A stretch of DNA of 64,000 nt, from NCBI GenBank assembly GCA_950097015.1, contig CATNEN010000034.1:4650001-4714000 (forward strand), in the 5' to 3' direction. Every line of letters begins with the position of its first letter. The stretch's first letter is position 1. The notes under the pieces are model-generated. The model did no database searches and had not been told where the DNA came from. It saw nothing but the letters and a program-made list of their open reading frames with translations. This document shows positions 36,831 through 64,000 of the stretch, in pieces. Made by a program: the position numbers and the translations under genes. The DNA is from Macrostomum hystrix (lineage: Eukaryota; Animalia; Platyhelminthes).

Positions 36831-38405
36831 GGAACAAATAATTCAGAAGTGTTTCTGCAGAAGCACACTCCTGCACAAAGGGCGGTCGGTGCTTTAGCAA
36901 AGAACAAACAGAATTGCTGCGATGCAGTGGGCAAAAGAGGAAGTTGTGCGGGAGTCACTCAGTGCAGGCGGGAGTAAGGTGCCTTGATTAACAAGTCCGC
37001 TGCATTGCTGAGTCACGGACTAAGCTCGCATATCTGCAAGGAAATTAGTAACACAGAGGACAGGGAAGCTTTCAGTTTTTCCGTTTCTGCAAGCAAACTG
37101 TACTTTTGCATGTAATTTGTTAATTAGAATGGCACTGAAGCTACTCTAAATTCTAAAAAGATTTCCTGAGTTTTGTACTTATTAATAATTGATCAACCTG
37201 GTTTTTGAAACGACAGTTCGCGGTGTAATTTCAGTTTTATATACCGATTTTTTAGTGATGCTGAATGTTGACCAGAATGGGTTATGAGAGTCGTTAAAAT
37301 GTATTTTCCTTCCATCTTTCTTTCTCGAATGCATTATTACAGCTAGCTTTACTGAGACTTGGAGTTCCCTCTTCTAGACTGTAATTTTCTTCTTTCTTTA
37401 GCTTCAAGGCGGTGTAAGTATAGGGTTGGACTTGCTCTATCGATTTTTGCGGCACATCGCCTCCTCAGCCTTCTTAGCCGTCCGCCTCACTCCAAATGCC
37501 GTCTCCTTCCACCTTTCCGACTATAGTCCGAGTACTTTCAGGCCCACCCCATCACTCTCTCCCCTTCTATCCCCCTCTCTCTCTCGGATCCGTACACACA
37601 GACAGAAAGACAGAGTCGCTCTCTCATTTCCTGCAGTAGTTTGCATTGGCGCAGCGCACACTGCAACTGTAAAGAGGTCCTGAAATCTGGGGCTTTGCGC
37701 TAGTGAGGTGGGGCCCGCTTATGAATACAGAGAAGCTTCCTAACTATATAGGACAAACCAGCTTGCAATTTTGCTTTGTTGCGTATCCATTCTCCCTCAT
37801 CCCTTCGTTACTAGCCCACCTCAACAAATCGATTATCCTCCTCATCTAACTCTTAGGCTCTGTTTTCTAGCCTCTACCCTGCTCAATTCTCATAACCTGC
37901 GCCCACCAACCCCTCCTTCCGCTGTCACTCCTCCACCTCCGACAGACCTCTCTCTATCTCGCTGTCCCTGGCAACGCTAGACTCAAATAGAAAACCGCTA
38001 GCAACCCTCCGCTCTCCTCCTAAGGCCGGACAGGACCTCCTAAGGTCGCAAAGGGACCCGCTCTCTGTCTCCATCTCCGTTGTCCTGCTCTTCCTCCCCT
38101 GTCCTCCCCTCGCTGCTTTTCCCCCATCTGTTTTGCCTCACCTTTGCAGTTCTTGCTCGACTACCCTCTTGTCGGCTCCTCGCACAGTCGCAGCCGCTGC
38201 TCTGCATCCTCGACTCCCCTCGTATTTTATTCCCTGCGGTTGCAGCTGTCTGCGCAATTTCCCTACTCAGTCCCAACACCCCCTGAGCCCCGGCTGCGGC
38301 CTGCATTCGCCAGATCTCCCCGGCAGCAAAATTGATTGCTTAAAATGCATCTTCAGGCATCGGGGCAGTCGCAGCTCCTCGTCAGGGCTAGCCGCCTTTG
38401 GTGCT

Positions 38406-41400: not shown

Positions 41401-42395
41401 GGCTCGCTGTCGCGCCTTGTATCCCAGCTGCTGGCCTGCCTGCACCAGACTGAGGCCTTCAGCGTGCGCGTGGCCGACGCCCGCGGTGGCGGCTCCCTGC
41501 TGAGCCAGCTGGGCTCGCATCAGCTCCGCTGCCTGCTAGTCCGCCACCCCAGCGCGCCTCCGCCACAGGATCCGCACTCGGAGCCGGCTGGTCCCGTCAA
41601 GGTGGGTGGCAGATTTTTGTACTATTTTACTGGACAGTTACCTCATTGTAGAAGCAATAAACTGCACTGGTATGCTTTTGATTTGACATTTAAAAGACAC
41701 GCTATTTTTCCCCCCGGGGCATTTCAAATACCCACTGCCTACTTCACGACAGCTTCAAACCGAATGACCGATTTTCGTGAAGGTCCACCATATACATCAA
41801 AATTTCCCGACGATCTCGACGATGCCAATGTTTTGTGATTGTGGAAGTTGTTTTATCGGATAGAGAAAAGTTTTGCCTGTGTCCTGAATTTTTATTGCGG
41901 GAGTCTGTCTACTACCGCCGTTTACCTATTGACCGTTTACCTAGCAATCTGGCCCTGTTAGTCTTATAGTATTTATAATTATAATCCAATTTGCCCCGAA
42001 CGCCGCAGGTTGATCCGCTCGCCCTAGTGCACACAGTTGAGCGCTATCTGGCCGAACGTATCGGCGACGTCGAAGACGCCGACCGTGGCGGCGACGGCGA
42101 AAGCTCCGACACGGAGCCGGACGAATCGGCTGACTCAGTTGAACCGGCTGCGGCTGCCGCTGCTGCAGCCGCTGCTGCCGCCGCATCCGCGGCCCGTCAT
42201 CGCCGCCGCCGACGCCTCCAGCTGCTGATTGGCGACGCCGTGTTGCAGTCAAGCATGACCGTCCTGCAGGCCGTCCGGCTGCACAGCGCCGGCTGCAGCT
42301 CAGATGATAGCGACCCAATGTCCGGCCTCGCTACTGTGTGGGCCCGCACCCATACTATTTATTATCGACCTATGCCTGTTGCATACTCTAGCGGA

Positions 42396-42430
<35 letters not shown>

Positions 42431-45400
42431 CAATCAGCAGCATCGCAGGGCTCGAGCTGCAACTGAGGGCTCTTCGCCAGCTTCACATGTCGGCTTCTCT
42501 GCCAGAACTAGTGCGGTTTCGCCGCTGCGCCAGTATCAGGATCAGCAGCTCCTAATTGGCATAACCGGCCTTACCGATCAGTGCCGCTCCGTGCTGTCTC
42601 TGCTGTCTGTGCTGTTCGGCCTCAACCAGCACTATCCCGCACTGTACAGTGCCGCCTATTGCGAAGCGGAGCCGCTACTGCCGCCTGTTGACTTTGTTAG
42701 CGCTAAACTGACCGCCAAAGTGATTCGTCAGCTCCAAGACCCGCTGGCTGTGCTCACTGGACAGGTTAGTAATCTTAATTAATAGCATAGCATGACCCTG
42801 AGCACACCCTAACTTTCTCATTGTCAGGCAGTGTATACACCCTCACTGTGCTCTTAATATAAAATTGGAAGGTGACAGGTACTCAAGGTCAATATATTCT
42901 CAATTCTCAGGTGCCCTCATGGGTTGGCCAGCTGGCGGCCGCCTGTCCCTTCCTGCTGGGCTTCGAGGCTCGCCACCTGCTGCTCTACGTGCTGCATTTT
43001 GATCGCGACCGGGCCCTACTGCGCCTTCAGGAGCTGAGCGGCGATGCGGCCGCCGGTCAGGATGCTGCGGCAGCTGCGGCCGGGGCTGCCGGCGCCGACT
43101 CTAGCCGGTCAGGCCGCGTTGCGCCCAAAGTTGAGAAGCGCCGCCGAGTTGTCAGCAGGCGCGATATGCTGCGCTCGGCTGAACGGGTCCTCGATGAGAT
43201 GGGCAACTCGCGCGCCCTGCTAGAGATCAGCTACGAGGGCGAGGTTGGCACCGGCCTGGGCCCAACTCTAGAATTCTACTCGCTAGTTAGCCGCGAGTTC
43301 AGCCGAGCGGATCTGGGTCTGTGGCGCTCTGGTCACGAACAGCCGGACGGCCTGCTTAGCTCGCCCTGCGGACTCTACCCGCGTCCGCTGCCCCGCAACG
43401 GTCACGGCCTGCAGCGCATCCGGCAGCGCTTCCGCACCCTTGGCCGATTCATGGCCAAATCTGTGCTGGACTCGCGCAAGCTCGACCTGGCACTGTCGCC
43501 AGTGTTCTACCAGTGGCTGCTGGGCCAGGAGAGTCAGCTGGGCTACAGACAGCTGGCGTTGGTGAGCCGCATTCTGCTCTTCGATTCGCCTCCAGCCAAC
43601 ACCTACTCACCCGATCTCAGTCTCACAGTCTCATCTCCCGTGTCTCATCTTTCCCGTGTCTCATCTTTCCCGTGTCTCATCTCTCCCCTGTCTCATCTCC
43701 CGTGTCTCATCTCTCCCGTATCTTATCTCCTTTATCTCATCTCTCTCGTGTCTCATCTCTCCTCTGTCTCATCCCTTCGGTGTCTCATCTCTCTCGTGTC
43801 TTATCTCTCCCCTGTCTCATCTCTCTCGTGTCTCATCTCTCCCCTGTCTCATCTCTCCCGTGTCCCAGCCTTATCTCCCCCACTCTCATGTTTGCATCTG
43901 ATCTGATCTCATGTCTCTCGTCTCCCTAATGCCTCCAGGTGGACCCAGATCTGGCGCGCACATGGCGACAGCTGGCACAGTTAGCTCTGCGCCGTCGGCA
44001 AATCCTGGAGGACTCGTCTCACACCCCAACCTCCAGAGAGCTGGCAATTGGCGCGCTGAACAATCTTGACGGCTGTCCGGTTGAGGAGCTCGGCCTGGAT
44101 TTCACTCTCCCCGGCTACCCGGATCTCGAGCTCAGCCGAGGCGGTCGGGACACCGTGGTCACGCTGGACCGTCTAGACGAGTACCTGGAACTCGTGGCTT
44201 ACTGGACCCTTGTTGAAGGTGTTCGCCGGCAGATGGAAGCCTTCATAGAGGGTTTCGAGTCTGTGCTGCCGGCCTCCAATTTGCGCCTATTCAGACCGGA
44301 CGAGCTCGAGCTGGTGTTCTGCGGCGCACCTGCCGGCTCCGACGCCTGGGACGCCGCGACTCTGTCGGAGGCCTGCCGACCGGATCACGGCTTCACGCTG
44401 GAGAGTCGGGCAATTCGACTGCTGTTCCAGCTGATGTCCGGATTTGACCTGGCTCAGAGGCGCAGCTTTCTGCAGTTTGTCACCGGCTCGCCAAGGCTGC
44501 CAGTTGGCGGTGAGTCATACATGAGCATGAGCTCATGATCGGGGAATTAAGTGCCTGGCTCTAGGATCTGATCTCTCCCGTTGATTCGGAGAACAGTAGC
44601 ATTGGCAGGAGGCTGTGAACACTTTCGACCTGCAGCCAGCGTGTGGTGGCAATTCTGCCCATTCCGCTGACTCCTGAGCACACACGCTCGCACAGGTGTG
44701 TACATCTGACCAGACTTCATCATCGTCAGGCAGTGTACACTCTCACTTTATCCCTCAAAGCTTTTTCACTCCTGGGCATAAATTGCATGACAAGCTCAAA
44801 TGAATTTGGCCTAGCCAAGGATTTGGGGGGGAGGGTGAGTGGCAGAGCTGTTAACGCTTGAGGTCCCTGAGCTCGATTTCGCGGCGAGGCCACATTCATT
44901 TCGAGAGCAGTCGCGGAGAGAAGGCTTGGGGGCTTGTCATGCAATTTACACCGTTAAGGCCCAATCTCCAAGGCACAGTGAGAGTGTACACTGTCTGGTG
45001 ATGAGAAAGTCAGGGCAGATGTACACACATGTGTGAGCGTATGCTTGCGTACGGTATCTGTGAGTGTGTGTGCTCAGCGAAATGGGCAGAATTGCCTCCT
45101 CGCTGGCTGCGGGTCTAGTGTCACCAAATGATGTGCCACTGCCCGCTATTTTTGCCATTTTTTATTTGCCGCGGATTCGAGCCCAGGTCTTTAGTCCGAG
45201 AGACTGAGGCGTTTCAACTCCGCCATCCGCCCCCACCATAAAATTGAGTGCGAAATAAAATATTTGCAAGCGAATTCTCAGCCGAACCCACCTCCTGCAC
45301 AGGCTGGCGCGCCCTCCATCCGCCTCTAACTGTCGTAGTGAAACGCTTCGAAGGCGATGACAATCCGGACAAGTACCTGCCGTCCGCCACCACCTGTGTG

Positions 45401-45499
45401 AACTATTTGAAACTGCCCGACTACTCTAGCGCCGAGGTGATGCAAGCCAAGCTGCAGCAGGCTATGGACGAGGGCCAATTAGCTTTTCACCTTAGTTGA
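38406..45499 (+). CDS. TRIP12: E3 ubiquitin ligase TRIP12/ctrip (ARM repeats, WWE, HECT), 1757 aa from ATG 38406; exons 38357/38406-39968, 40066-41601, 42009-42764, 42911-43561, 43939-44509, 45303-45499
   Basis: [14 protein letters not shown]; WWE domain ([38 protein letters not shown]); [14 protein letters not shown]; [26 protein letters not shown]; [15 protein letters not shown]; C-terminus [27 protein letters not shown] with the catalytic Cys. All junctions are in frame. Confidence 0.94.
42805..42850 (-). mobile_element. Short fragment of the same SINE
   Basis: actttctcattgtcaggcagtgtatacaccctcactgtgc resembles the reverse complement of SINE positions about 10365-10400. Confidence 0.5.
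43620..43925. repeat. About 17-bp CT-rich minisatellite filling a TRIP12 intron
   Basis: Unit tgtctcatctctccc(c/g); the same family occurs inverted inside the hAT MITE (about 16470-16560). Confidence 0.9.
44615..44820 (-). mobile_element. Inverted partial copy of the same SINE body
   Basis: ggcaattctgcccatt..gtgtacatctg..cagtgtacactctcact..aaattgcatgacaagc is the reverse complement of the SINE body. Confidence 0.8.
44830..45150 (+). mobile_element. Second copy of the same SINE (head partly deleted), in the last TRIP12 intron
   Basis: gaggtccctgagctcgatttcgcggcgaggccacatt..gagaaggcttgggggcttgtc..gtgagagtgtacactg..gaaatgggcagaa..gctggctgcgggtctagtgtcac aligns collinearly with 10240-10530. Confidence 0.85.
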
Positions 45500-45949: not shown

Positions 45950-46620
45950 ATGTCTCATACCTGTTCCTTCTTAACTCATACCTGTTCTTTCTTAACTCAT
46001 ACCTGTTCTTTCTTAACTCGTAACTGTTCTTTCTTAACTCGTAACTGTTCTTTCTTAACTCGTAACTGTTCTTTCTTAACTCATAACTGTTCCTTCTTAA
46101 CTCATAGCTGTTCTTTCTTAACTCGTAACTGTTCTTTCTTAACTCATACCTGTTCTTTCTTAACTCATAGCTGTTCTTTCTTAACTCGTAACTGTTCTTT
46201 CTTAACTCATAACTGTTCCTTCTTAACTCATAGCTGTTCTTTCTTAACTCGTAACTGGTTCCTTCTTAACTCATACCTGTTCCTTCTTAACTCATAGCTG
46301 TTCTTTCTTAACTCGTAACTGTTCTTTCTTAACTCGTAACTGTTCTTTCTTAACTCATAACTGTTCCTTCTTAACTCATAGCTGTTCTTTCTTAACTCGT
46401 AACTGGTTCCTTCTTAACTCATACCTGTTCGTCCCTCACTCATACCTGTTCGTCCCTCACTCATACCTGTTCGTCCCTCACTCATACCTGTTCCTTCTTA
46501 ACTCATGCCTGTTCGTCCCTCACTCATACCTGTTCCTTCTTAACTCATGCCTGTTCATCCCTCACTCATACCTGTTCCTTCTTAACTCATGCCTGTTCGT
46601 CCCTCACTCATACCTGTTCC
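45950..46620. repeat. 21-bp minisatellite downstream of TRIP12
   Basis: cttaactc(g/a)taactgttcttt grading to ctcactcatacctgttcgtcc. Confidence 0.93.
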
Positions 46621-49039
46621 TTCTTTTATCTCTAGCTGAAACGCAGATCTGCAATTAACGCGGTTTCCAGCCATTGCTTTGAACAATTCCTGTCTAACTA
46701 CCTGCCCGTCTTTGTCTAGCTTGCTGTAAATCAGCCTTTTCATTCTTTGTGGCATTATGAAGGTACATTGTGATGGCCTTCCGAAATTTTAAATGAATAT
46801 TCTATAGCTGTTATTTGTATTTTGTTTTAACTGATTGCATTAATAACACTGAGCAACTGTCTTGCGATAATGCAAGTGTGTCTCTTCGAAGCAATGTGTT
46901 AAATTTATTATTTATTATATTGAGGCACTACAAAGCTATTATCCACCCTTTATTAACGAACCCAATATGTGTCCATTGTGTCCCTTTTAATTTAAATTCT
47001 GATTCTTTCAGTTCAGGTATTGTTTCTGTACGCATTGTCTCCTGTCTGATTCCACGAGTAAGATAGGCTCTACTATATGATTATTATTTACTATTAGTAG
47101 TGCTATTATAATCTGTCTATTCGCTTTCTAAACTTGTACATAGGCTTATTTTGTCTAGTATTCTATATATTCTGGTATTGAATCATTCAGAAAGAAAATA
47201 ACTTATTTAGATGGGCACCCGTTCATTCGTAAGCTTGATGGGTCATTTGTAAGATCAATTGTTCATTTTTGTAGGTCGATTGATCATATTCAGATGACAA
47301 TGACTCATTAAGGAAATCAGTGACTCATTTTTATTGTTATTATTCAGAAGCTTGATGACCCACTTAGAAGGGTAATGACCCAATAACCCTCCCAAGCACT
47401 AAACGGTCTTTCTATTGTTGCCGACCAGCCAATTGTTTTTTAAAGTGCATGCGCACTTTTGCATATAGGCAGGCACCCACAGTAGCAACGGCCAGTTGGC
47501 GAAAATTTCGGCCTCTAAACCCAAATCGCTTTGCGTGTCGTCTGTCCTCTCCTCTCTTTCGATTATAATTTTTTTTTATCATTTTAGTTCCGTGCTGTGT
47601 GACCGTATTGCAATAATTTGATGAAATTCTACTAACTTTTATTCTCCGTGTTTTCCAACTTTCTTTGCGACCTTAAACTTGCTATTATATATATTCAGCT
47701 ACTATATATGCTTTTCACTAACTATTACTGATTATATAGAACTTGTGTGTTGCAGTTTCGTGTCCGTGCTCCGCTTTTTAATTAACGTCACTAAAAACCC
47801 TCACACAGGGCCTCTCTGCATTGTGCATCCAATTTTTGTTTATTAAAACAAATTACAAGTATAAATATACCGGAAGAGGAATTCTAAATTACTATTGAGC
47901 GGTCAGTGTCGCTTTTGTCACACTCACAGACACACACGCCTATTTATGCCATCTGGAAAAAGCGGTCTATTGTGAAAGTAAACATCTTATTGAGTATAAA
48001 AGAAAAGCACGCATATTGTTAAAAAACTGAAAATGTGAGTCTGCTTAGCCTATTCCTCCTTTTTTCTTCTAGTTTTGTTTACTTCTTAGATGAATGTTGC
48101 TTCACTACACTACTTAATGTTAGTAGTGTTGCTATCGAAATTGCTGCCACGTGACAGAAATCGCATGATCATGTGACAGTTGAAAAATTATTGCGAACAT
48201 GGAGAAGCATGCTAGTGTTGATCTTATCTCGACGCTTGGTATTAATAGTGCAATGTAATTGCCCCTCAGATAGTAAACTTGGCAAATACCAGCTGTTCAA
48301 AGTAATTATTTTTAGCTTATATGAGTTAAACACGTTACCATACTGTTATTTTCACTCCAATATTTTTTAGCCTTGGCTAAAGCGTGTTTACTTAATGACT
48401 TAATGCTGGAACTTGCAGCTTTGCGACTGTACTAGGTGAGCGGGAGTATATCTGCCCGTGTCTTTCATGTCTATTAGGACTAGGAAGTCGGTCAGGGCTT
48501 GGCTGGTCAATAAATAATTAATGAAATGCTGAAAATCGAAATCCAATTTAAACTTCAAAGAAGTCGGTTGTGAGTAATTAACATCATACATCGGTTGTAC
48601 GATACGGCGGGAAATATCCTGTTATTTTACGCCCTATTGAAACTTTTAGAGCAACAGGCATTTTGGCTTGCAATAGATAAAGTATTCCAATAGGCCGTTT
48701 TTTATAAGCAAGCTACTTGTAATATAATATATTCAATATAATCCTAGACATATAGGAAAACGTCTCTGGTAAATTTTTCTGTCTGCGAAATTGAACTATC
48801 TGTGTTTGTTGGCGCACTTTAAAGTACATATTCATCAAGAAAGAACATTTGTTCAGTCCGTAGTTTACTTACTTACTAGCACTTTTAAATTTACTAGGAT
48901 GACCGTATCATTAATTGACTTAAATATAGGTGAATCTGTGTTTGAGATGAAAAAATTGATTGGTTAAGTAAATTGTGTCAGAGACCGGATTCCTACTCTA
49001 CATACATCGAAATAACGAGTGAGTAACTTGAACTTGGTC

Positions 49040-50185
49040 ATGGGGATCATGGTCAACTTGGGGATCATTGTCAACTGGGTGATCATCATCAACTGGGGGA
49101 TCATCATCAACTGGGGGATCTTTGTCAACTGGGGGATCATTGTCAACTGTGGGATCATTGTCAACTGGGGGATCATTGTCAACTGGGGGATCATTGTCAA
49201 CTGGTGGATCGTTGTCAACTGGGGGTTCATTGTCAACTGGGTGATCATCATCAACTGGGGGATCATTGTCAACTGGGGGAACATTGTCAACTGGAGGAAC
49301 ATTGTTAACTGGGGATCATCATCAATGGGGAGTCATCATCAACTGGGGGATCATTGTGAACTGGAGGATCTTTGTCAACTGGGGGATCATTGTCAACTGG
49401 GAGATCATCATCAACGGGGGGATCATCATCAACTGGGGGATCATTGTCAACTGTGGGATCATCATCAACTGGGGGATCATTGTCAACTGTGGGATCATTG
49501 TCAACGGGCGGGATCATTGTCAACTGGGGGATCATCATCAACTGGGGGATCATTGTCAACTGGGGGATTATTGTCAACTGGGGAATCATCATCAAATGGG
49601 GGATCATGGTCAACTTGGGGATCATTGTCAACTGGGTGATCATCATCAACTGGGGGATCATCATCAACTGGGGGATCTTTGTCAACTGGGGGATCATTGT
49701 CAACTGTGGGATCATTGTCAACTGGGGGATCATTGTCAACTGGAGGAACATTGTTAACTGGGGATCATCATCAATGGGGAGACATCATCAACTGGGGGAT
49801 CATTGTGAACTGGAGGATCTTTGTCAACTGGGGGATCATTGTCAACTGGGGGATCATTGTCAACTGGGGGATCATCATCAACTGGGGGATCATTGTCAAC
49901 TGGGGGATCATTGTCAACTGGGGGTTCATTGTCAACTGGCGGGATCATTGTCAACTGGGAGATCATCATCAACGGGGGGATCATCATCAACTGGGGGATC
50001 ATTGTCAACTGTGGGATCATTGTCAACTGGGGGATCATTGTCAACTGGGGGATCATTGTCAACTAGGGGTTCATTGTCAACTGGGGGATCATTGTCAACT
50101 GGGGGATCACTTGTCAACTGGGGGATCATCATCAACTGGGAGATCATCATCAACGGGGGGATCATTGTCAACTGGGGGTTCATTG
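49040..50185. repeat. 18-bp minisatellite, about 63 copies
   Basis: Unit gatcattgtcaactgggg. Confidence 0.95.
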
Positions 50186-52202
50186 TAGCTTTAAAAAGCT
50201 GTAAATTCAGTTGCTAAAAAGTATATACTAGACGAATTAAAAGTATTTCTGCTCCCCAAAGGGGGGCAAAACTTGCTAGTTGAGTTACTATATTTAATCC
50301 CTCGATAGCAGCTTTTGGGTTATCTCTATATTATTTTTCTATATTGGTGGTGACAATGTACTCGTAATTTAGAATGTTAACATTTTAGATTAGACATTTA
50401 GTATAAGTAGATGTACTCGAACAATAACTACAGCAGTGTCTTCCAATATGTGTTTGTATGTACTTTTTGCGCACCGTCCTTTAACAAGCCATCTCGCGGC
50501 TTTATTGATCTTATTTCGCTTAGGCTAGGCTAGGATCTGTGATCGCGATGTGAACTTTAATCTCACCTATCTAAGGTTAGATTTTTTGTTACACAGCGCA
50601 TTGTGTCCCTTGAAATCTTATAATGAAATTTTCTGACTGCATTTGTTTATTTGAATTAACTAGGCTATGGAAGAAAACATATTTAGTACATTGTTTTTTA
50701 TTACTATCCTGTACACAATATACTACTTACTAAGTTTTATCTGCGTGCGTTTGTGAATTATAAAGTTTACATTCAGCTGTAGTTTGTATTTGATAGGCTA
50801 TAGGCGATTATATTTGTCATTATGTGTGTCATTCGCTCATACTCCAATAGAATATACACCATTTATTAACATCAAGTACAGCCACTTAGCATTGTCACCT
50901 TCGCATTAAAGCCATAATTAGCACCAGATTAGCCCGCAATTGTCCGGTTTATGACAGAATACAGTCCTAAATTAACGGGCTATAATTGATTGCGTCTCGT
51001 GACTCTCACCTATTGGTCTGTGTGTATTTCATTAAAGCAATTAATTCGTGAGAATGCCAGTGTGGAATGAGTAGATTGTAATTCGCGAAAAGTACCTTTC
51101 TATGAAAATGATATGAAGTATCGCATAATTATATGGAATTTCTCAGTATAAAAATACTCTTGTGAACTTTCAAAAGACTGCCTACATAATCAAATTGTTA
51201 TGATATGCTGCTACAACAAATAAAAATGAAATTTCAATTCTGCCCTCTAATTAGCATCTTTTACCTTAGCTTTCGACCTTTAAATTCTTATTATTCAATT
51301 TTAAGATTCTAATTTTGTCCTTCATTTGTACTTATAAATATAATTTAGTAGTGGTTGAGTAGGTTTTTTTCATTTAATGTCAGTCAGCAGTCAGATAATT
51401 TTGTAATGCAATTGTAATGATTTTGAATTCTAGAAAGTTCTTTAAGTTTACTTGCAGTGCAGATTCAGCAACCCCCTCCGCGGCAGCGCCCCTCCTCAAA
51501 ATGAGTGCTAGTTTAGAATTTCGTTTAATACAAGTGTAAGAGTCCAGACAGGCAGACTAGACTATGGTTTTTAGGGGACAAAAAATGAGAAAAAAACTAA
51601 GCCATGTGAAAGGTGACATCGCAGGCAGTTTAGGGTTGGGCTTCGTATTTTCCTTCCCCTTATTTTCTATCTTTGGAAAATGCGAAGAGTCAAGAGACTT
51701 GTGGACTCGTGTAGGACTGGCCTCTATTTCTGAAGGCACCCGCCTCATCCTACGCCGGCTTGCTTGTGCCAGCCAATGGAGGCGAATGGCACAGCCATTG
51801 CTCCGGTTTAAAGTTCATTTGGCCCTAATTCAGTGCAAGGGTATAAAATATTTTTCGTCTTCTCTCTCCCCCCCTTGGGTGCACCAACCCCAAACACTGC
51901 GAATTTCAGCCAACCCAAAGTCTCCGCTCTTTCGTCACACAAAATAAGTGCGCGTCCTCTATACACCCGCCTCAACCTCCCCAATCCGGGCAAGGAAAAG
52001 AAAAACTTGTTTTCCAGCCCAATGCGAGGATATATATAGCAGCAGAAAGCGGCAAAGTCAAGCGCATCGTTAACAAATTACTCAAGTCTGTGAAAACAAG
52101 CCGATAGCTAAATAGGACTATTCTGCTATCGCTAAATTCCTGCGGCAATAAAAAGTAGAATTTTTGCCACGAAATCAACTTTTACAGAACTACAAAACAG
52201 TG

Positions 52203-53576
52203 ATGATGGTCTACGGACATCCTGCATCAGCGGCTGACAGAGCGTTCTTCTTGCAAAAGTAAGAAATCATTAAATATGCATTCTACAACAATGCATTAAG
52301 TTTATAAATATTTAAGTTAACAATGAATCCTTTTAGACTTCTTAAAAAATACCTCGAATGTTTTATTCTGCCAACGTCTATATCGGTTATCCCTTATCGG
52401 TTATTAGTCTTATGTTTTCCCGAAAATTCCAAAGTTCAATTGTCCTTTTATTCACTCTAGTAGAGTCTAGTCAGTTTCTTGGACTATCCTAACACGATTT
52501 GCTGTGCTTTATTCTTTCTTGGTCTAAGGGTTGAAGAGAACAGAGGGTGGGTGGTCTTTGTTTTGCTGTTTTCTCACGAGCCCCGCCAGTCCCCGTTGGC
52601 TGTACACCCTCCCCAGTCCCCCATAGAACTTGGGGCACCAACCCCGCACACATTGTGTCATGTGTTTACAGGCCCAGTTAGACTGGGGGTGGGGGACTAC
52701 AGCCAACCCCAAGCGCCACACGACTTGGACCTTCTGCCCTGCACAATAATAAGGACACCCCAGGGCCCAAAACAAAGTATAACTAATGTCCCAAAAGTCG
52801 GCTTCCAGTGCACCCACCCCAATTCCAGTCTGGACTCTGGCTCTGGGGCTCTTCAGGACCTTCATATATAGCTAGGGATTTCCTGTCCTTTGCTCTACTT
52901 TTACTCCACCAAAAGTATCAATGACGACAGTCGAGCCTCATTGTACCCAGTCTGGGAAACCTTAAAAGAGGTGGTTAACCAACAGGCGCGAAACAAAGCA
53001 GAAATGTCCCCAGACAGTCCCCTACCAGCCTCTAATTGCTTGGCCAGCCAAGTGCAACAGCTCGGCTCTTCTATCTTCAGCTTTCTGTCGTCGGTGAAGC
53101 ACCAGTCTGACGAGGCCTCGCCGACGCCGCCCCAGTTTCACGTCGGCGGCTTTGTTGGACCCTTTAACGGTCTGATTCATCCGGTGCCCGAGCCTCTAAT
53201 GGCGGCCACTGCTGCTAGTGCAACCATGACCGCGCAGCCGCAGGCGTCAATTTCTACGAATAATGGCGGCGGTGGCGGCAGCGGCTTTCTGTACAATCTG
53301 CTCACAGCTCGCGATGCTTCGGCAATTCAGCAGCGCAGCGCCTTCCACGGCGGCGGCAGTGGCGGTGGCGGCGGCAGCGGCAGCGGCGTCGGCGCTGGGA
53401 CATCCTCACGTGCCGGCAGCTCAGCGGCCTCAATGCCTGCATTCGCATCAGCAGCAGGGCCTGGAATCTCGGCCGCCATCTCGCTAGCCGACTTTCCGCG
53501 CCGCTCGAATTCTATGGGCAATCCGAGTATGAGGCGCGGCAGCGCGCACCTACTGCCGCCACCGAGCCAGCTGCTT

Positions 53577-53621
<45 letters not shown>

Positions 53622-55561
53622 CCTCACCACAATCATCAACCGCAGTCCCAGGCCTCCAGCACCAGACCTTCATCAGTGCCCCGCGGCCTGCATGCCGTCG
53701 CAGCAGTCGCCGGCGCACCCTACTGCGGCATGTCGCCGTCGACATCTTCGCCAAGCGCCTGCGGGTTTAGCTCCTCAGAGGAGCCGTTGGACCTCAGCAG
53801 CAGCATGCGAGCCATGGCGGCGCACGAGCATCAGCTGGCGATGATGGCAGCCGCTGACGCTGACAGCAGCATGGGCTCGCCACCGGAGCAGCAGCCGATG
53901 CTGCGTACCATCCTCAGCCAGGCCGCCCACCGGTTCCAGGCGCAACAGCAGCCGGTTCAGCTGGCCAAGAAGAATGTCATGGTGGCGCAGTCGCATGTCT
54001 CCGATTGGCTGCGGAAAGGCTCCGAGCTGGTGCAGACTAACGCTGCCCTGTTTGGCGCGCTGGATCGCGGCGCCCAGGCAGCCCTGCTGTGCCGAGCTTG
54101 GCCCAGCATCATCCAGCTGTACATGCTGGAGAACAGCTTCCATTTCGCCGTGACACCGTGCTCCATAGACTCCGCCGACGATCAGGTGAATCGAGTCAGC
54201 CGGCTGCCAACTAAGAAGTTCGCCGAAGATCTTCAGCGGCTGATCACTGCTGCCTCGGCCATCCCGTTTGACAACATGACCTACAACCTGCTACGCCTTG
54301 CTGCCATATTCAAGCGTGAGTTGCACTGCTTTGAATTTCTCCCTGGAAAATCCCAAACAACATCTATGGGATGCGATCCCGATGCGCAATTAGGACAGTA
54401 GGGGACAGTTGTGTCACAATGAATCATTTGCCGTATATCACCCCAGCTCAGTCTATCCCCTTGATTGCGCTTTAGTCACCCCTTCTCGTCTACCCCTGCC
54501 GACCCGCAAGGCAATGCCCAAATGCCTGGTTCATCATGTTTATTAGGAATGCGCGCTATTGCCATTGCTAACGGCCCTGTGTTGTTATGCGCCGGAATGC
54601 ACTCAAGTGCTTACGCATTGGCGCAGTCACTCACTCACTCACTCACGTGTCTCAGTGCCCCCACCCATCCTCCCTTCTTTTCCTATCTCTTTTCTCCCGC
54701 TTTTCTGGCCTTGGTTGCTTTTTTCTCTTCTCTCCTTGTAATTTCTCTCTCTCTGATAGCCAATTGCACTTTTTGGGACCCCCGGACCCCCCACTCAATC
54801 TACGCCCAATTTTGGGCCCGCCAGCTCCCGAACCAACCCTCTCCGCTGCTTAGTCACCGCGTGTAGCAACCTTCTTCCTTCGTTCTGTCCCCCCTCTCTC
54901 CCACACGGGGGGGGCAGCGCACCCGGGCTGACTCACCATCTGGCAGGCAGTAGAGGACGGGAGAACGGGGCGCTGCTGGGGTGGGGCCAACTTGACCGCC
55001 GCGTGAACTTGCTTCGGACTTTATTCTCGCGGCCGGAACGGCACATCCGTGGGCCTAATGTGATTTCTGCTTGTCTCGATTTCCCTCACTGGAAACTATT
55101 TTTGGGAGCTAAAATAAGCTAAACGGAATGCCATTTCTCGCCCAATTCAGGCATGCGGGACCACTTTCGGGAATTTGATCACTGGTGCTGGTTAACTAAT
55201 TCCTCTATGCACTATTTCTATTCGTCACCGGAACTGTCCCGGCATTCGTTTTTTGGGTCAGAAAGTGAATTAGTCAGTGGTCCAGTGATGACTCAATTCA
55301 GGTCAACAAATAAATTGCTTTTCCCCCTTCATTTCAGCCGAATCTGTGCATGAGGTCCACCTGCAGGAGGTCCAGGAGGAGATCATGAAGCACGTCATGC
55401 GCCACCTGGAGATGAAGGGCATGGCCAAGCACGCGAAGGATGCTGTGGCCGTGCTTCACGCTGTGTCAGCAACAGACAAGGAGATGCTGGAGAATCTCTT
55501 CTGTCGCCACCTGCTCAGCCTGTCTGTTGACGAGTTTATCAAAGGCAAACTCGGCTGTTGA
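52203..55561 (+). CDS. Nuclear receptor with LBD but no DNA-binding domain, NR0B (DAX-1/SHP)-like, about 559 aa; exons 52188/52203-52258 (tentative), 52916-54315, 55338-55561
   Basis: The LBD region PMLRTILS..QPVQL..LVQTNAALFGALDRGAQAALLCRAWPSIIQLYMLENSFHFAV..RLPT..LQRLI..YNLLRLAAIFKP|E..LENLFCRHLLSLSVDEFI parallels SHP ([51 protein letters not shown]). No C4 zinc finger is present in the ORF, and none was found between TRIP12 and this gene. Junction 54315|55338 is GT-AG and in frame. Confidence 0.75.
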
Positions 55562-55623
55562 TAGAAATCAACTCTGCTCAATTCAGTGTCTACCTTCATT
55601 CACTGACTTCCTCCATGTCCTTC

Positions 55624-55936
55624 CTCACCCCTCCTGACACATCCTGACCCTCCTGAAACACCCCGACCCTCCGGACACACTCTGACCCCTACTGACACAT
55701 TCTGACCCTCCTGACACATCGTGAAACATATCCTGACCCCTCCTGACACATCCTGACCCCTCCTGACACACCCCGACCTTCCTGACACACCCCGACCCTC
55801 CTGACACATTCTAACACCTCCTGAACACTCTGACCCCTACTGACACATCGTGAAACTCATCCTGACCCCTCCTGACACATCCTGCCCCCTCCTGACACAT
55901 CCTGACCCCTCCTGACACATCCTGACCCCTCCTGAC
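55624..55936. repeat. About 20-bp minisatellite just after the receptor stop codon
   Basis: Unit cctcctgacacatcctgacc. Confidence 0.9.
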
Positions 55937-57269
55937 AACTTTGTGAACAACCCAGTGACCTCTCTGATCCTCTTCTAATGATCATTCCTATCGTTTTCCC
56001 TCGGCAGGTCTGCTTTCCCACTCCGACCTGTTTCCTCCAGACAATTTTGCTAAGCGCAGTTGCTTTGTATTGTAATCTTTGTCCAGTCTGCTTGACTTGT
56101 AGTTTAAAATTCTGTATAAAAAATAACGCTGTTTATTTCCTTCTTTACTTTATTGCAAATGCCAGGATAAAAATCTGAGTTTTGCTTTTTTGAATGCTGA
56201 AAATGGCACTCGAGTTTTTACAAATTAACTTTCCGATGTAGTTTCTTGCCCGGTAAAACAAGTATTTGTTCTATTAATCCTTGTTCCATATTCAACAGAA
56301 GAAACGACACAAACATTTCTGGTTGAATTGCAGCTCATCATCTATATTTTTTCTTCAGTTTCTGTCAGTGAACCCAGTGTTGGATTCGCTGCCAAGTCTT
56401 GCAATTGTGCTTTGTCGATAAATTATTATTTTTTGTTGTCATCAACAGTTGTTGATTTCTAATGCTATTTTATTCTCTTCTCGGTTCATTCAGTCGTAAG
56501 TAAAGACACCCCTGACTCCCAGGTGATTTCGCTCATCCATGTTTTGTTCTCTTTGTCTTATTTCTTAACCGGAATTTGAATCCCCAATTATAGTTAACGA
56601 ATTCCTGTACTCCTGTATTTACCTGCAGTATATACTAGATCATTTGGCGGGACTGTGACTTTAATTTAGGATTGCATTTCCCTAAACGTAATCTGGCATG
56701 TGTTTAACATATTGCTGATTGTCTATAGAAACACGCATGCATACACCGCTGCAGCTTGCTATTGCCTGTACATAAAACCGCTTTTTATTCTGTTATTCAA
56801 GTCGGGCATTAGATCCCTAAACCCAAATCAATGTTGTCGTTTTTTGTTTAATTATCGACTTTGAGAATTTCCCTTTCGCTCTCGTTTGCTTTTTTGTCGC
56901 TTATTCCCTATCGAACGCACCTTTGCCTTTTAAAGCCATTGTCACATCCGTAACACAAATTAATATGTACTCATTTGGACTGTCTTTAGAAGCGTTGTCT
57001 GTTGATCCATTTTTTCTATTATTGTCTCTAGTTTGTGTTGTTGCAGTGCTTCAGTGCAAAGTAGTTTTATTAATTAACATATTCTTGTGCATAACTCGTG
57101 TTTACAAAACACCTTAGCGATCTGTTGTCATCCATTCAATGATTTGTGTTCATGCTGTTTTGTAGCTGTGTTTTTATGTTCCCATTGCGTCTGTGTCCTG
57201 TTGTACTTTTTTCAAAATACAATTTTTGACAATTGTCTAGAAATGAATTTCTGTCAAAGACTTAATTTT

Positions 57270-58600
57270 ATTTTCTGGGTTCACAATGGATTTCTGGGTT
57301 CACAATGGATTTCTGGGTTCACAATGGATTTCTGGGTTCACAATGGATTTCTGGGTTCACAATGGATTTCTGGGTTCACAATGGATTTCTGGGCTCACAA
57401 TGGATTTCTGGGTTCACAATGGATTTCTGGGTTCACAATGGATTTCTGGGTTCACAATGGATTTCTGGGTTCACAATGGATTTCTGGGTTCACAATGGAT
57501 TTCTGGGTTCACAATGGATTTCTGGGTTCACAATGGATTTCTGGGTTCACAATGGATTTCTGGGTTCACAATGGATTTCTGGGTTCACAATGGATTTCTG
57601 GGTTCACAATGGATTTCTGGGTTCACAATGGATTTCTGGGCTCACAATGGATTTCTGGGTTCACAATGGATTTCTGGGCTCACAATGGATTTCTGGGTTC
57701 ACAATGGATTTCTGGGTTCACAATGGATTTCTGGGTTCACAATGGACCTCACAATGGATTTCTGGGTTCACAATGGACCTCACAATGGATTTCTGGGTTC
57801 ACAATGGACCTCACAATGGATTTCTGGGTTCACAATGGACCTCACAATGGATTTCTGGGTTCACAATGGACCTCACAATGGATTTCTGGGTTCACAATGG
57901 ACCTCACAATGGATTTCTGGGTTCACAATGGACCTCACAATGGATTTCTGGGTTCACAATGGATTTCTGGGTTCACAATGGATTTCTGGGTTCACAATGG
58001 ACCTCACAATGGATTTCTGGGTTCACAATGGACCTCACAATGAATTTCTGGGCTCACAATGGATTTCTGGGTTCACATTGGATTTCTGGGTTCACAATGG
58101 ACCCAGGGTGTTAGATTTCTGTTCTCTGAGGTTCACAATGGACCAAGGGTGTTAGATATCTGTTCTCTGAGGTTCACAATGGTCCCAGGGTGTTAGATTT
58201 CGGGTCACTCAGGTTTGCAATGGATGTAGGGTGTTAGATTTCTTATCTCTGATGCTCACAATGGACCCAGGGTGTTAGATTTCTGTTCTCTGAGGTTCAC
58301 AATGGACCCAGGGTGTTAGATTTTTGTTCTCTGAGGCTCACAATGGACCCAGGGTGTTAGATTTCTGTTCTCTGAGGTTCACAGTGGTCCCAGGGTGTTA
58401 GATTTCTGTTCTCTGAGGTTCACAATGGTCCCAGGGTGTTAGATTTCTGTTCTCTGAGGTTCAAAATGGACCCAGGGTGTTAGATTTTTGTTCTCTGAGG
58501 CTCACAATGGACCCAGGGTGCTAGATTTCTGTTCTCTGATGTTCAAAATGGACCCAGGGTGTTAGATTTCTGTTCTCTGAGGTTCACAATGGACCCAGGT
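57270..58600. repeat. Compound minisatellite: 19-bp, then 31-bp, then 41-bp units
   Basis: gggttcacaatggatttct; the same plus cacaatggacct; gggtgttagatttctgttctctgaggttcacaatggaccca. Confidence 0.95.
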
Positions 58601-59299
58601 TACAATATTTATTAGTTAACGATTACTTTTTACGACTTTTTTATGCTAAAATTTCTCAGCTGAAAGTCTACGATTAGAATTTCGAAATGTGAGCCTGTCT
58701 TTCGCATTGCAATGGCTGCACTACCTATTCTTTGGAGCACGTAGCACAGTAAAAAGCAGCAGAAAGAATTTAGGTGCTTTGTGTTATTTTCGTTTTGATT
58801 CATTCTTTTTGTTACGGAGTGAATGCAATGGTCCAGGTCTAGCCTACAGTTTGATGTAAAGTATATTAGACTCTGAATGGATGCTAATAAAAGCTTATAC
58901 TATTAGATAATATACGATTATACGTCGTATACTGCTTGCTATCTTACGAGTTTTAATGTAGTGCAGCCCAACCGACGCACCCCACAATAATCTGGTTCGA
59001 GCATACCTAACCTTTTCTTTATTCTTTTGCACCCAAGAAAACATTTTTTGCAATCTGCACAACTTTACAAGAAATATTTATTGTGTAAAGGCTTATTTAC
59101 ACTGCCCGAAAACTACTGGTTTTTTGTGTACATCTGTGAGATGTATATGTGAAAAGCAATAAAAAATTATTTTGAGTACAATCCTGTGCTCAGGGCAGTG
59201 TGAGTCTTTAGTCTCTGAACTCCCACACTTAAAAATCCCAAAACTGTGCCACAGCCCACAGTCAAGCTATGCGCCTGTCAAGCTTAGTTCCATTTTATC

Positions 59300-59745
59300 C
59301 CTCACCCATCTCTGTATCCCTCACCCATATCATTATCCCTCACCCATCTCTGTATCCCTCACCCATCTCTGTATCCCTCACCCATCTCATTATCCCTCAC
59401 CCATCTCTGTATCCCTCACCCATCTCTGTATCCCTCACCCATCTCATTATCCCTCACCCATCTCTGTATCCCTCACCCATCTCTGTATCCCTCACCCATC
59501 TCATTATCCCTCACCCATCTCTGTATCCCTCACCCATCTCTGTATCCCTCACCCATCTCTGTATCCCTCACCCATCTCTGTATCCCTCACCCATCTCATT
59601 ATCCCTCACCCATCTCTGTATCCCTCACCCATCTCTGTATCCCTCACCCATCTCTGTATCCCTCACCCATCTCTGTATCCCTCACCCATCTCTGTATCCC
59701 TCACCCATCTCATTATCCCTCACCCATCTAATTATCCCTCACCTG
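59300..59745. repeat. 19-bp minisatellite
   Basis: Unit atccctcacccatctc(tgt/att). Confidence 0.95.
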
Positions 59746-61371
59746 TCTCATAGTTCATTCTCCATCAGATTTTTCTATTTTATCTGTCTCTCTCTTTTAT
59801 ATTATTCCAGTAGTTTTCTAGTTATTCCTATGCAGTTCTGTCAAGAACATAGGGTTTGCAAAGTGCTATGTAAGCAATGCTTTGCATTCTGGTTTAGAAT
59901 TTGCAAAAGTTTTTCTTTATACGAGTATTTAGGGGTTACAATGCAAAATCTCGGAGTGGGTATTACGTAATGTCTATTTCCAAGCATGTAAAACTACGAA
60001 ACACATAAATGAAGGTTATGTATAGGGCACATTGTGCCTCCAAACCCTCCCCACCCCCGCCAAACTCATTGATCCACGCCCAAAAAGCTTTCAGCCAGAC
60101 CGTCCGTCGGTCCCTGTCGGCGTCCACCGGCCCGGCTCCGGTTGCTTGAGTGAGGGCTGCTGAGTCACGCACTGGGCGCATGACCTATTCGTATGCTATA
60201 CGTGCAAAGGCGTGCTGTGGGGTATTGCTGGGTCCCGCCCCTCATCAGACCCCCCAGCGGTTACGTAACCCCATGGGTACACACATTTTCCTATACCGCG
60301 CAGACAGTAAATTAGAGATTAGGCCTATATAGTTAGACGAACAAGGCAGGATTTGGAAAACTGCTGCAAAATACTAGAGCGAGGATTTCGGTTGCGTAAT
60401 CGCCTGCCCGCCCAGAGGCCTCTTTGGACTAAAAGCTGCCTGGAGCCGGGCGGACTCGCAGGAAATGAGTGGCTTGAGAGGTGGGGCTTCAGTCTAAGGG
60501 ACTGGAAAGTGTTAGTCATCATCAGCAAGGCATGATCTAAGCTGCATGGGCTTCGGCTAGCAGCCCACGCGCACTCAACTCATTAGCTTTTTCTGGGGCC
60601 TGTGTGTTGCGTAATTTCTGTATGACTAATTGTCACATGCTGCCAGCTAGCTATAGCAGCAACTGACAATCCAAGGTCGGGTTTAGTTTTAGAAAGTAGA
60701 ACTGTTCGCCAATAAACAAAAATTAACGAACCAAAAAACTCGTCACTCGTCAAATATTATACGAGTACCATTCCCATTATCTAACTGATGCGTAAATGGG
60801 CAATCTATAGGATCAAGTGATTGTGTGCACGGAAACTTAAAAAATGAAATACGAGTTATAGTGTTCTCAGTGGAAACAACACGGCTCTGTGACTCATTTC
60901 TCTGCCGTTCTATTCCCAACCCTTACTCGTTCTTTATCAGCGAAAAAATACCACTTATATTTGTGCATGCTTTTGGAAAACTAAAATTAGAAGTTGGGCT
61001 ATCAAGGAGGTACGCCGCTCGTAATTGCTGGAATTTAGCAATCTGCTAATAGCTCGTATGACCTTTATAGATGACTTTATGCTCATGGCAGCTCAGTGTA
61101 ATACGAGTGCAACTGCGCCATGAGTCAGTGACACTGAGGATATTTTTTATTCAAGAAGTGGGTTGCCGTGAAAGAAAAGCGCTTCGACCCTCTCTTCATC
61201 GGGGTTCATAGCTGGGTAGATCGAGTACGGAGTTGTGTCCAAACAGTCCAACGACCTCTAAATAGCAAAAACTATGAGTATGTCAGCGTCATTGGTGACG
61301 AAACTAGGAGTGTGCCTGCGTCATTGGCGAAGAAGCTTGTAGGATGTCTGTGTCATTTTAAGGAAGCTAGA

Positions 61372-61700
61372 AGTAATGTCAGCGACATTGGTGGCGAAGT
61401 TAGAAGTAATGTCAGCGACATTGGTGGCGAAGTTAGAAGTAATGTCAGCATCATTGGTGGCGAAGTTAGAAGTAATGTCAGCGACATTGGTGGCGAAGTT
61501 AGAAGTAATGTCAGCGACATTGGTGGCGAAGTTAGAAGTAATGTCAGCATCATTGGTGACGAAGTTAGAAGTAATGTCAGCGACATTGGTGACGAAGTTA
61601 GAAGAAATGTCAGCATCATTATTGACGAAGCTAGAAATATGCTAGCGTCATTGTGACGAAGTATTTCAGCGTCATCGTGACGAAGCTAGAGGTATGTCAG
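61372..61700. repeat. 33-bp minisatellite
   Basis: Unit gaagttagaagtaatgtcagcgacattggtggc. Confidence 0.9.
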
Positions 61701-62060
61701 CGTCTTTGGTAACGAAGCTATGAAGGTGTTTTTGTGTAAGGCTGTCTCGACACTCCAGCTTTCCCTTAATTCGCTCATGCCTCGCAGATAAAAATTGTTG
61801 AACTCCAGAACTGGCTGCAGTGGACTCAGGTTGGCTCATTAAACTTGTGTCAAACAAAGTCCAGTTGCAGTCTGGTTGCACTAATATTTGTTGACTGTCA
61901 GCGCTGTTTACATTCCTGACCAGTTTGGGTTGGACTCTGTTCTGGGTGGGGTAAGGAAATTTCCAGATTGAAAAACTGAGTCGCCAGATTTTGCAGGTTC
62001 TCGAAATTCACAGGTTTTCTCTTTGTGAGCTAACAATCTCTGTTCCATTTCTGGGGGGGC

Positions 62061-63200
62061 AGTCTCCCCAATCCAGTCTCCCCAATCCAGTCTCCCTAAT
62101 CCAGTCTCCCTAATCCAGCTCCCCAATCCAGTCTCCCCAATCCAGTCTCCCCAATCCAGTCTCCCCAATCCAGTCTCCCCAATCCAGTCTCCCTAATCCA
62201 GCTCCCCAATCCAGTCTCCCTAATCCAGTCTCCCTAATCCAGCTCCCCAATCCAGTCTCCCTAATCCAGTCTCCCTAATCCAGCTCCCCAATCCAGTCTC
62301 CCCAATCCAGTCTCCCCAATCCAGTCTCCCTAATCCAGTCTCCCTAATCCAGCTCCCCAATCCAGTCTCCCCAATCCAGTCTCCCTAATCCAGTCTCCCT
62401 AATCCAGCTCCCCAATCCAGTCTCCCCAATCCAGTCTCCCTAATCCAGTCTCCCCAATCCAGTCTCCCCAATCCAGTCTCCCCAATCCAGTCTCCCCAAT
62501 CCAGTCTCCCTAATCCAGCTCCCCAATCCAGTCTCCCCAATCCAGTCTCCCTAATCCAGCTCCCCAATCCAGTCTCCCTAATCCAGTCTCCCTAATCCAG
62601 CTCCACAATCCAGTCTCCCCAATCCGGTCTCCCCAATCCAGTCTCCCCAATCCAGTCTCCCTAATCCAGTCTCCCTAATCCAGCTCCCCAATCCAGTCTC
62701 CCCAATCCAGTCTCCCTAATCCAGTCTCCCTAATCCAGCTCCCCAATCCAGTCTCCCCAATCCAGTCTCCCTAATCCAGTCTCCCTAATCCAGCTCCCCA
62801 ATCCAGTCTCCCCAATCCAGTCTCCCTAATCCAGCTCCCCAATCCAGTCTCCCCAATCCAGTCTCCCCAATCCAGTCTCCCTAATCCAGCTCCCCAATCC
62901 AGTCTCCCCAATCCAGTCTCCCCAATCCAGTCTCCCTAATCCAGTCTCCCCAATCCAGTCTCCCTAATCCAGCTCCCCAATCCAGTCTCCCCAATCCAGT
63001 CTCCCTAATCCAGCTCCCCAATCCAGTCTCCCCAATCCAGTCTCCCCAATCCAGTCTCCCTAATCCAGCTCCCCAATCCAGTCTCCCCAATCCAGTCTCC
63101 CTAATCCAGCTCCCCAATCCAGTCTCCCTAATCCAGTCTCCCCAATCCAGCTCCCTAATCCAGCTCCCCAATCCAGCTCCCAAATCCAGCTCCCTAATCC
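62061..63200. repeat. 13/14-bp minisatellite
   Basis: aatccagtctccc(c/t) and aatccagctcccc. Confidence 0.95.
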
Positions 63201-64000
63201 TGTCATTATAGAATTTTTTAAAGGAAAAATGACACATCTGTTTGACATGTTTTCTCGAAATTTTCCCAAAATATTCAAGTAATTGAGAAAGCTATGTATA
63301 GCAGCTACATATAGGTATTCACATAATTTGCTAGAGCAGTGCAGTTCAGGTTTTGCAGTTACTGCATGTGCAAGAATAATAAATAGAAAAAAATACATAG
63401 GGTATTGTCGTACCAAATCCAGGTGGGTCCTTGTTGTGAAGGAAAAAGACAAATCCAGAAAAAATGCCAATAAAGCAAGCACAATGAGAAGGTAATTGTC
63501 CCTTAGAGATTATCTCGTTTTTAATTGTCCCTTGGGCCTAGAGCCCAGTGTCTCTGACTAGCTGACTCAGATACCCAAACCATGAGGTAGGCACAGAGTG
63601 ACGGTAAAAGTGCTTCCGCAGTCTCCGCGGCCGATCTAAATTTAGAATAATTTGTCCCGCATGCATCCAGCTGCATTGGACAATCAAGTACTACAAGCCA
63701 GTCGCGTAAACACCCAATATGAACCTATTACTCATGTTCACCTGTTCACCTGTTTTCGCCTGGTTTGCACTCGAACAGTTTCTGGTGCGTACTGCATAAG
63801 CCTGTGAGTGTGCTCTGACCTACTATCTGAAGCTAAACTTTCTTATAAAATGTAAATGTCCTTAAGAATAATGACCTCGGATAAGTAAGTTTAACTGCTG
63901 ACTCACCCGCTGCAAGGCTAAGGGCTATCCTATTAATCTATAGCCATGCAGGGTCAAACCTGCAAACCTGTTTTGAAAGACCACTTTGTCTCGATACGTA

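Follow-up and report, generated by a model that had tools for sequence, protein, structure and literature searches.

Does a gene of the flatworm Macrostomum hystrix encode a nuclear receptor without a DNA-binding domain (DBD), of the kind represented by DAX-1 (NR0B1) and SHP (NR0B2)? NR0B receptors were long regarded as a vertebrate novelty. The question is raised by a stretch of 64,000 nucleotides (assembly GCA_950097015.1, contig CATNEN010000034.1, positions 4,650,001 to 4,714,000 of the forward strand; hereafter the window, numbered from its first letter), in which a first-pass annotation made from the letters alone had placed such a gene at 52203-55561. Our analysis leads us to regard it as probable that this locus is an expressed three-exon gene for a DBD-less receptor, the long-branched flatworm orthologue of spiralian Nr0b1/2, for which we propose a DAX-1/SHP-like co-repressor role. 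The NR0B-type identity of the gene is supported by spliced mRNA, by a family of DBD-less proteins with members named Dax1 or NR0B1, and by the predicted fold.

An expressed three-exon gene

Over 50300-55700 we aligned spliced contigs taken from four public runs of a single study, and in every run they matched the window at 100% identity. The joints 52258>53081 and 54315>55338, both with GT..AG borders, were present in all four runs at a depth of 14-25; contigs that skip introns must come from RNA, and the gene is therefore expressed, whereas the first-pass annotation had named a lack of expression as grounds for refutation. The resulting structure, which includes the first and last parts of the ligand-binding domain (LBD), is as follows.

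52048-52258, + strand: exon 1, comprising 5' untranslated region (UTR), which starts at 52048 or earlier, and 56 coding bases from the ATG at 52203
52259-53080, + strand: intron 1, 822 nt, GT..AG, phase 2; joint depth 14-22
53081-54315, + strand: exon 2, coding for the N-terminal arm (low complexity, polyglutamine, nuclear-receptor (NR) boxes and PLDLS), followed by the LBD up to two thirds of its length
54316-55337, + strand: intron 2, 1022 nt, GT..AG, phase 1, within the LBD at IFK-P-ES; joint in four runs
55338-55561, + strand: coding part of exon 3, with the remaining third of the LBD (aa 432-504) and the stop codon at 55559-55561

The coding sequence (52203-52258, 53081-54315 and 55338-55561) gives a protein of 504 amino acids, and its ends coincide exactly with those drawn in the first-pass annotation. 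The length of about 560 amino acids given there has to be revised, since the RNA contigs join 52258 to 53081, which also rules out the implied acceptor near 52.9 kb. Exon 1 encodes MMVYGHPASAADRAFFLQ and two bases of Asn19, and intron 1 interrupts NR box 1. The phase-1 intron at IFKP/E was correctly anticipated: a long open frame (52890-54401) contains the GT donor at 54316, the acceptor AG ends at 55337, and joining to 55338 completes the split codon CCC (Pro) and reads IFK-P-ES. Exon 3 includes ENLFCRHLL and the C-terminal helix SVDEFIKGKL, and the 3' UTR extends past 55700.

The contigs of the four runs begin at 52048-52076, and in-frame stops lie 5' of the ATG at 52149, 52113 and 52071. 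A 1.9-kb intron-less Logan contig of another Macrostomum species (L001, encoding the protein P0002) aligns to the window as three blocks (52200-52258, 53774-54314 and 55337-55561), and this congener transcript has the same start as the window gene, likewise with in-frame stops before its ATG. A CAG-type repeat at 53566-53633 encodes a 16-residue polyglutamine tract at which every RNA contig breaks, and the continuity of exon 2 therefore rests on the genome and the congener transcript. Three Macrostomum sequences keep the frame intact, and the ratio of non-synonymous to synonymous divergence (dN/dS) against the congener is about 0.14 in the LBD and about 0.27 in the arm, with dS near saturation. 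In comparison with the congener, the gene is under purifying selection; a pseudogene is ruled out by its spliced expression together with dN/dS.

Within intron 1 we also observed low-depth contigs (depth 3-5.5) that are colinear with the genome over 52823-53066. They start at 52823-52825 in two runs; the reading frame there is open as of 52890 and contains an ATG at 53004. In UniProt, the model of the M. lignano orthologue begins in the equivalent stretch (MQQLGTTIFSFLSS). These contigs may mark an alternative first exon in place of NR box 1, or may be nothing more than pre-mRNA.

Absence of a DNA-binding domain

The protein contains six Cys and no CxxC. Neither the finger pattern C-x2-C-x13-C-x2-C nor a P-box was found in the six frames of the whole 64-kb window, and the 15 isolated CxxC tetrapeptides on the + strand between 45.5 and 56.5 kb include none that makes up a finger; the earlier statement that neither the open reading frame (ORF) nor the sequence upstream holds a zinc-finger pair was thus borne out. 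The gene product is a receptor without a DBD. A zf-C4 exon spliced on in cDNA, together with a robust grouping of the LBD with NR2E/NR2F, had been named as a finding that would overturn the NR0B reading; we observed no upstream joints and no loose ends in the four-run contigs over 50300-55700, with stops preceding the ATG. A hidden DBD exon is ruled out by the motif scan, the contig joints and the upstream stops.

A spiralian family of DBD-less receptors

The first word-index search recovered three Macrostomum proteins only. The LBD of the window gene is 88% identical to that of an M. lignano protein. A profile built from Macrostomum sequences alone was then searched against 1.84 billion representatives and found 114 proteins at E<=1e-3, of which 44 were at E<=1e-10; all 114 are without a DBD, and the first-finger motif occurs in none of the 220 family proteins collected. 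A word-index search with a full-length family alignment likewise recovered family members only, some of them named Dax1 or NR0B1. The named members are exclusively spiralian, comprising molluscs (Dax1 of Azumapecten farreri, NR0B1 of Plakobranchus and Elysia marginata, and many others), the annelids Owenia and Capitella, the nemerteans Lineus and Tubulanus, the brachiopod Lingula, and bdelloid rotifers.

In an unrooted maximum-likelihood tree of 48 LBDs, the grouping of the sequences followed the phyla and required the fewest label changes possible, and Macrostomum formed one long-branched clade with the locus L003 (SH-aLRT 94). L003 encodes the nearest relative outside Macrostomum (P0005, L003:2025-3365; ENA ERZ25070786, ctg93981l), which shares FLYNLL, EPLDL and MLRTIL with Macrostomum, and its source is perhaps another flatworm. 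The phase-1 intron of the LBD recurs in the family. L003 has a 60-nt phase-1 intron at LLK-G, exactly at the Macrostomum position, through which the ORF caller had read; Owenia splits the Gly in LFNE-G, one codon from the Macrostomum site; and 102 of the 220 family ORF calls break off at the site of this intron. By its sequence, the Macrostomum gene is a fast-evolving flatworm member of the spiralian Nr0b1/2 family.

A second, divergent M. lignano paralogue (P0004, UniProt A0A1I8F4F9) has 52% LBD identity, and the gene has therefore been duplicated within Macrostomum. The genomic locus of M. lignano (L005) is frameshifted as assembled and sits at the end of a contig, which makes it unusable for synteny or upstream exons.

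The C-terminal domain as a nuclear-receptor LBD

53931-54315, + strand: first part of the LBD, aa 303-431 (VQLAKKN ... LRLAAIFK) and the first base of Pro432

The LBD motifs on which the first-pass annotation relied were recovered in the translation, where PVQL, F..L....Q..LL...AW (written there as F-x-x-L...Q..LL..AW) and ENLFCRHLL are all present. In a feature search with the ESM language model, 27-28 of the 30 nearest clusters carried the Pfam receptor domain PF00104, and UniProt labels the M. lignano orthologue an 'NR LBD domain-containing protein'. The link to characterised receptors runs through an alignment of 34 family LBDs (A2), 25 of which are matched by PF00104 (best 1.8e-20). Searched against PDB sequences, the A2 profile matched COUP-TF2 at 4.5e-26 (94.9 bits) and DAX-1 at 3.5e-25 (92.0 bits), as well as USP/RXR, PNR and SHP (5.5e-19, 71.7 bits), with 682 PDB sequences at E<=1. 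Conversely, a hidden Markov model of A2 from which the Macrostomum-like rows had been removed gave the spliced window protein a score of 131.4 bits, aligned across positions 6-213 of the 216 in the model; the score corresponds to an E of 3e-33 for a library of 1.84 billion.

AlphaFold2, supplied with A2, modelled the M. lignano LBD with a predicted local distance difference test score (pLDDT) of 94.5 and a predicted template-modelling score (pTM) of 0.90. Foldseek searches with this model returned receptor LBDs only, among the matches listed. In VIA-align comparisons the highest Z-scores were those of DAX-1 (19.3; root-mean-square deviation 2.6 over 175 residues) and SHP (18.9), followed by NR2F6 (18.7), TLX (18.0), COUP-TFII and TR4 (both 17.6) and PNR (17.2), with RXR at 15.2 and others at about 14; the alignments with Z of 17-19 span 171-189 residues. 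As judged by the family profiles and the model, the C-terminal domain is a true nuclear-receptor LBD with a predicted helical sandwich fold. Weak matches to complex-I NDUFV3, obtained when PDB sequences were searched with the LBD, were dismissed as chance.

Linear motifs of the N-terminal arm

52251-53087 (coding 52251-52258 and 53081-53087), + strand: NR box 1, LQNFL, aa 17-21, in FFLQNFLSS
53289-53303, + strand: NR box 2, LYNLL, aa 89-93, within GSGFLYNLLTARD
53784-53798, + strand: PLDLS, aa 254-258, by its sequence a CtBP-binding-type PxDLS motif
53901-53915, + strand: NR box 3, LRTIL, aa 293-297, immediately N-terminal to the LBD

Macrostomum and the family have a common order of elements: NR box, NR box, PxDLS, NR box, LBD. 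In the alignments, FFLQNFL of NR box 1 stands opposite ILQNLL/ILQTLL of annelid, brachiopod and nemertean members, FLYNLL of NR box 2 opposite TLQSVL, HLYNAL and KLFNIL, EEPLDLS opposite EP(M/I)DLSCK, and MLRTIL of NR box 3 opposite SLLRNLL, both Leu columns of which are invariant in the full-length family alignment (A3). A PxDLS-type motif occurs in 153 of the 178 long-arm family proteins, at a median of 64 amino acids before the LBD. We know of no PxDLS motif in vertebrate DAX-1 or SHP. Because the motif is near-universal in the spiralian family and, to our knowledge, lacking in DAX-1 and SHP, the ancestral NR0B may have served as an adaptor that tethered CtBP and bore three NR boxes. We offer this only tentatively; on such a history Macrostomum would have kept the arm while its LBD drifted past Pfam, and its role may differ. 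The Platynereis nr0b1/2 paper mentions LXXLL motifs, and CtBP is absent from its main text (PMC13012086).

Genomic neighbourhood

38133-45499, + strand: TRIP12-type HECT E3 ligase gene with WWE, TPR_TRIP12_N and HECT domains
45954-46625, 49042-50186, 55622-55937, 57272-58599, 59296-59743, 61363-61662 and 62060-63204: minisatellite arrays

The first-pass annotation had placed TRIP12 upstream on the same strand, as we also found, with the end of the HECT domain at 45499. The exons of this gene are very alanine-rich and of low complexity. The 6.5 kb that separate it from the receptor gene are mostly minisatellite, and arrays flank the receptor gene on both sides; their repeat units are 10 to 129 bases long and occur in as many as 83 copies. 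One of them starts 60 bases past the stop codon, in the 3' UTR, where the RNA contigs differ from the window in copy arrangement.

Comparison with known systems

The closest counterparts are the spiralian Nr0b1/2 proteins (Dax1 of Azumapecten (Chlamys) farreri, UniProt S4T5C6; CgNR0B; BgDAX/LgDAX; Platynereis dumerilii nr0b1/2), with which the Macrostomum protein shares the DBD-less LBD layout, the motif order and a phase-1 intron after the LF(N/K)xG site. It differs from them in that its LBD identity to them is just 23-31%, it falls below the PF00104 threshold that most of them pass, its NR box 1 is interrupted by an additional intron and is not preceded by the Cys-rich CxC element, its helices 9-10 are shorter, and its C-terminus reads VDEFIKGKLGC where theirs reads VLLKEMLQ.

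Vertebrate DAX-1 and SHP are likewise DBD-less, carry LxxLL-type boxes N-terminal to the LBD and, with Z of 19.3 and 18.9, gave the top structural matches of the M. lignano model. LYNLL resembles the LYxxL boxes of DAX-1/SHP. By contrast, no pairwise sequence similarity to DAX-1 or SHP was detectable among PDB sequences, the Macrostomum protein lacks the 65-70-amino-acid repeats of DAX-1, and its gene has three exons where theirs have two.

RIP140 (NRIP1) is a co-repressor that combines LxxLL boxes with PxDLS-type CtBP motifs. Its logic, in which NR boxes serve for docking on liganded or active receptors and a CtBP-binding motif serves to repress, is predicted also for the Macrostomum protein; unlike the latter, RIP140 has no LBD, and the two sequences are unrelated. 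The auto-repressed NR2 orphans (NR2F6, COUP-TFII, TLX, PNR and TR4) belong to the same LBD conformation class and have profile scores equal to those of NR0B, but they possess a zf-C4 DBD and bind DNA themselves.

NR0B-like genes in molluscs, which the first-pass annotation had mentioned, are indeed on record, and annelids have them as well (PMC4070562, PMC4388693, PMC13012086). CgNR0B has been described from Crassostrea gigas (PMC4070562); BgDAX and LgDAX were reported in a three-way comparison that gave DAX as common to snails and humans, not to Schistosoma (PMC4388693); and Platynereis nr0b1/2, in which LXXLL-related motifs are conserved and exon 1 measures about 1.3 kb, was described as the only orthologue of dax-1 and shp, a gene that Ecdysozoa have lost (PMC13012086). 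The grouping of the spiralian family with vertebrate NR0B rests on these published mollusc and annelid trees. In sea bass DAX1 the intron lies at amino acids 221/222 of 301, 80 amino acids from the C-terminus (PMC1891300), the distances in the window gene and in Owenia being 74 and 82 amino acids; codon and phase were compared within the spiralian family.

Weighing the explanations

Several observations weigh against an NR0B-type receptor at this locus. PF00104 gave no match at E<=10 with the exon translations and none with the full-length orthologues P0001 and P0002 or their LBD parts, and neither a phmmer search of PDB sequences with the LBD nor the Macrostomum-only profile returned a receptor at E<=10. 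As no solved receptor was matched directly, it is transitive homology and predicted structure that carry the LBD assignment, and the fold was predicted for the 88%-identical M. lignano LBD rather than for the protein encoded in the window. NR0B cannot be told apart from NR2F/NR2E by the profile and structure scores. The four runs are recorded with kind '?', and their RNA origin is deduced from the GT..AG joints. Receptor binding, repression and CtBP interaction, and with them the whole co-repressor circuit, are what we infer. The first-pass annotation had itself listed the lack of a PF00104 hit as grounds for refutation, and the match it proposed as a check did not appear for the window protein or its Macrostomum orthologues; in our judgement this result is overruled by the transitive profile evidence together with the predicted fold.

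The missing Pfam match could also be explained if the locus were a functionless remnant of an LBD-like sequence, decaying or neutral, and the very long branch and an arm rich in low-complexity sequence would fit such a history. We consider this highly improbable, given a frame intact in three Macrostomum sequences with a dN/dS of about 0.14 in the LBD, expression with correct splicing in four runs, short linear motifs kept across phyla, and a confident fold prediction. That the gene is an ordinary receptor whose DBD exon was missed, lying further upstream or being trans-spliced or alternatively spliced, is likewise highly improbable. Macrostomum employs spliced-leader trans-splicing, the transcription start is not provable from contigs, and at 52823-53066 there is a minor form, either unspliced or with an alternative 5' end, but three in-frame stops separate the contig starts from the ATG, the congener transcript has upstream stops too, four runs show neither upstream joints nor loose ends, the window holds no zinc-finger motif, TRIP12 ends at 45499 on the same strand, and a DBD occurs in 0 of 220 relatives.

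A more serious alternative, although still an unlikely one, derives the family from an NR2-type receptor (COUP-TF, TLX or PNR-like) by an independent loss of the DBD, so that the likeness to DAX-1/SHP would be convergent. The family profile ranks COUP-TF2 (94.9 bits) slightly over DAX-1 (92.0) and well over SHP (71.7), the Z-scores of NR2F6 and TLX are within about one unit of those of DAX-1 and SHP, and the automatic NCBI names of members scatter over PNR-like, COUP-TF2-like, dissatisfaction-like and NR2C1. Yet DAX-1 and SHP are the two best structural matches, the members from molluscs and annelids fall with NR0B in published trees (PMC4070562, PMC4388693, PMC13012086), and the architecture appears to be a common one, with NR boxes in the arm and an LBD intron about 80 amino acids from the C-terminus (sea bass DAX1, PMC1891300).

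Proposed mechanism and implications

For the flatworm Nr0b1/2 orthologue that we favour, we propose the following mode of action. The protein would consist of a disordered N-terminal arm, bearing three LxxLL-type NR boxes and PLDLS, and a C-terminal LBD whose predicted fold is most like those of DAX-1, SHP and the auto-repressed NR2 orphan receptors. Presumably unable to bind DNA, it would dock with its NR boxes onto the activation function 2 (AF-2) coactivator groove of DNA-bound receptors; both its LBD and CtBP, brought in by PLDLS, would then serve to silence these receptors, the protein thereby acting as a DAX-1/SHP-like co-repressor with a RIP140-like logic.

In the platyhelminth receptor survey, genomes were mined by DBD queries and only sequences with receptor zinc fingers were kept (PMC8363021), in line with the earlier suggestion that DBD-based surveys would miss a gene of this type. 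In that survey, two M. lignano 'NR0' members of another study are described as carrying DBDs, one being moved into subfamily 6 and the second having an atypical P-box (PMC8363021). We found no report in the literature of an NR0B-type gene in any flatworm. In the context of molluscs and annelids, NR0B knock-out affected growth, lifespan and reproductive timing (PMC13012086).

The gene extends the DAX-1/SHP-like (NR0B) family, known from molluscs and annelids, to flatworms, where at least the early-branching Macrostomum lineage retains a member, with two in M. lignano. This species serves as a model for transgenesis and RNAi, and its gonads and regeneration are well studied, so that direct tests can be made of the DAX/SHP-like repression proposed here and of what the conserved CtBP-type motif does. 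More broadly, an LBD can diverge far and yet keep its fold, intron and linear motifs, which calls for caution with receptor counts based on Pfam.

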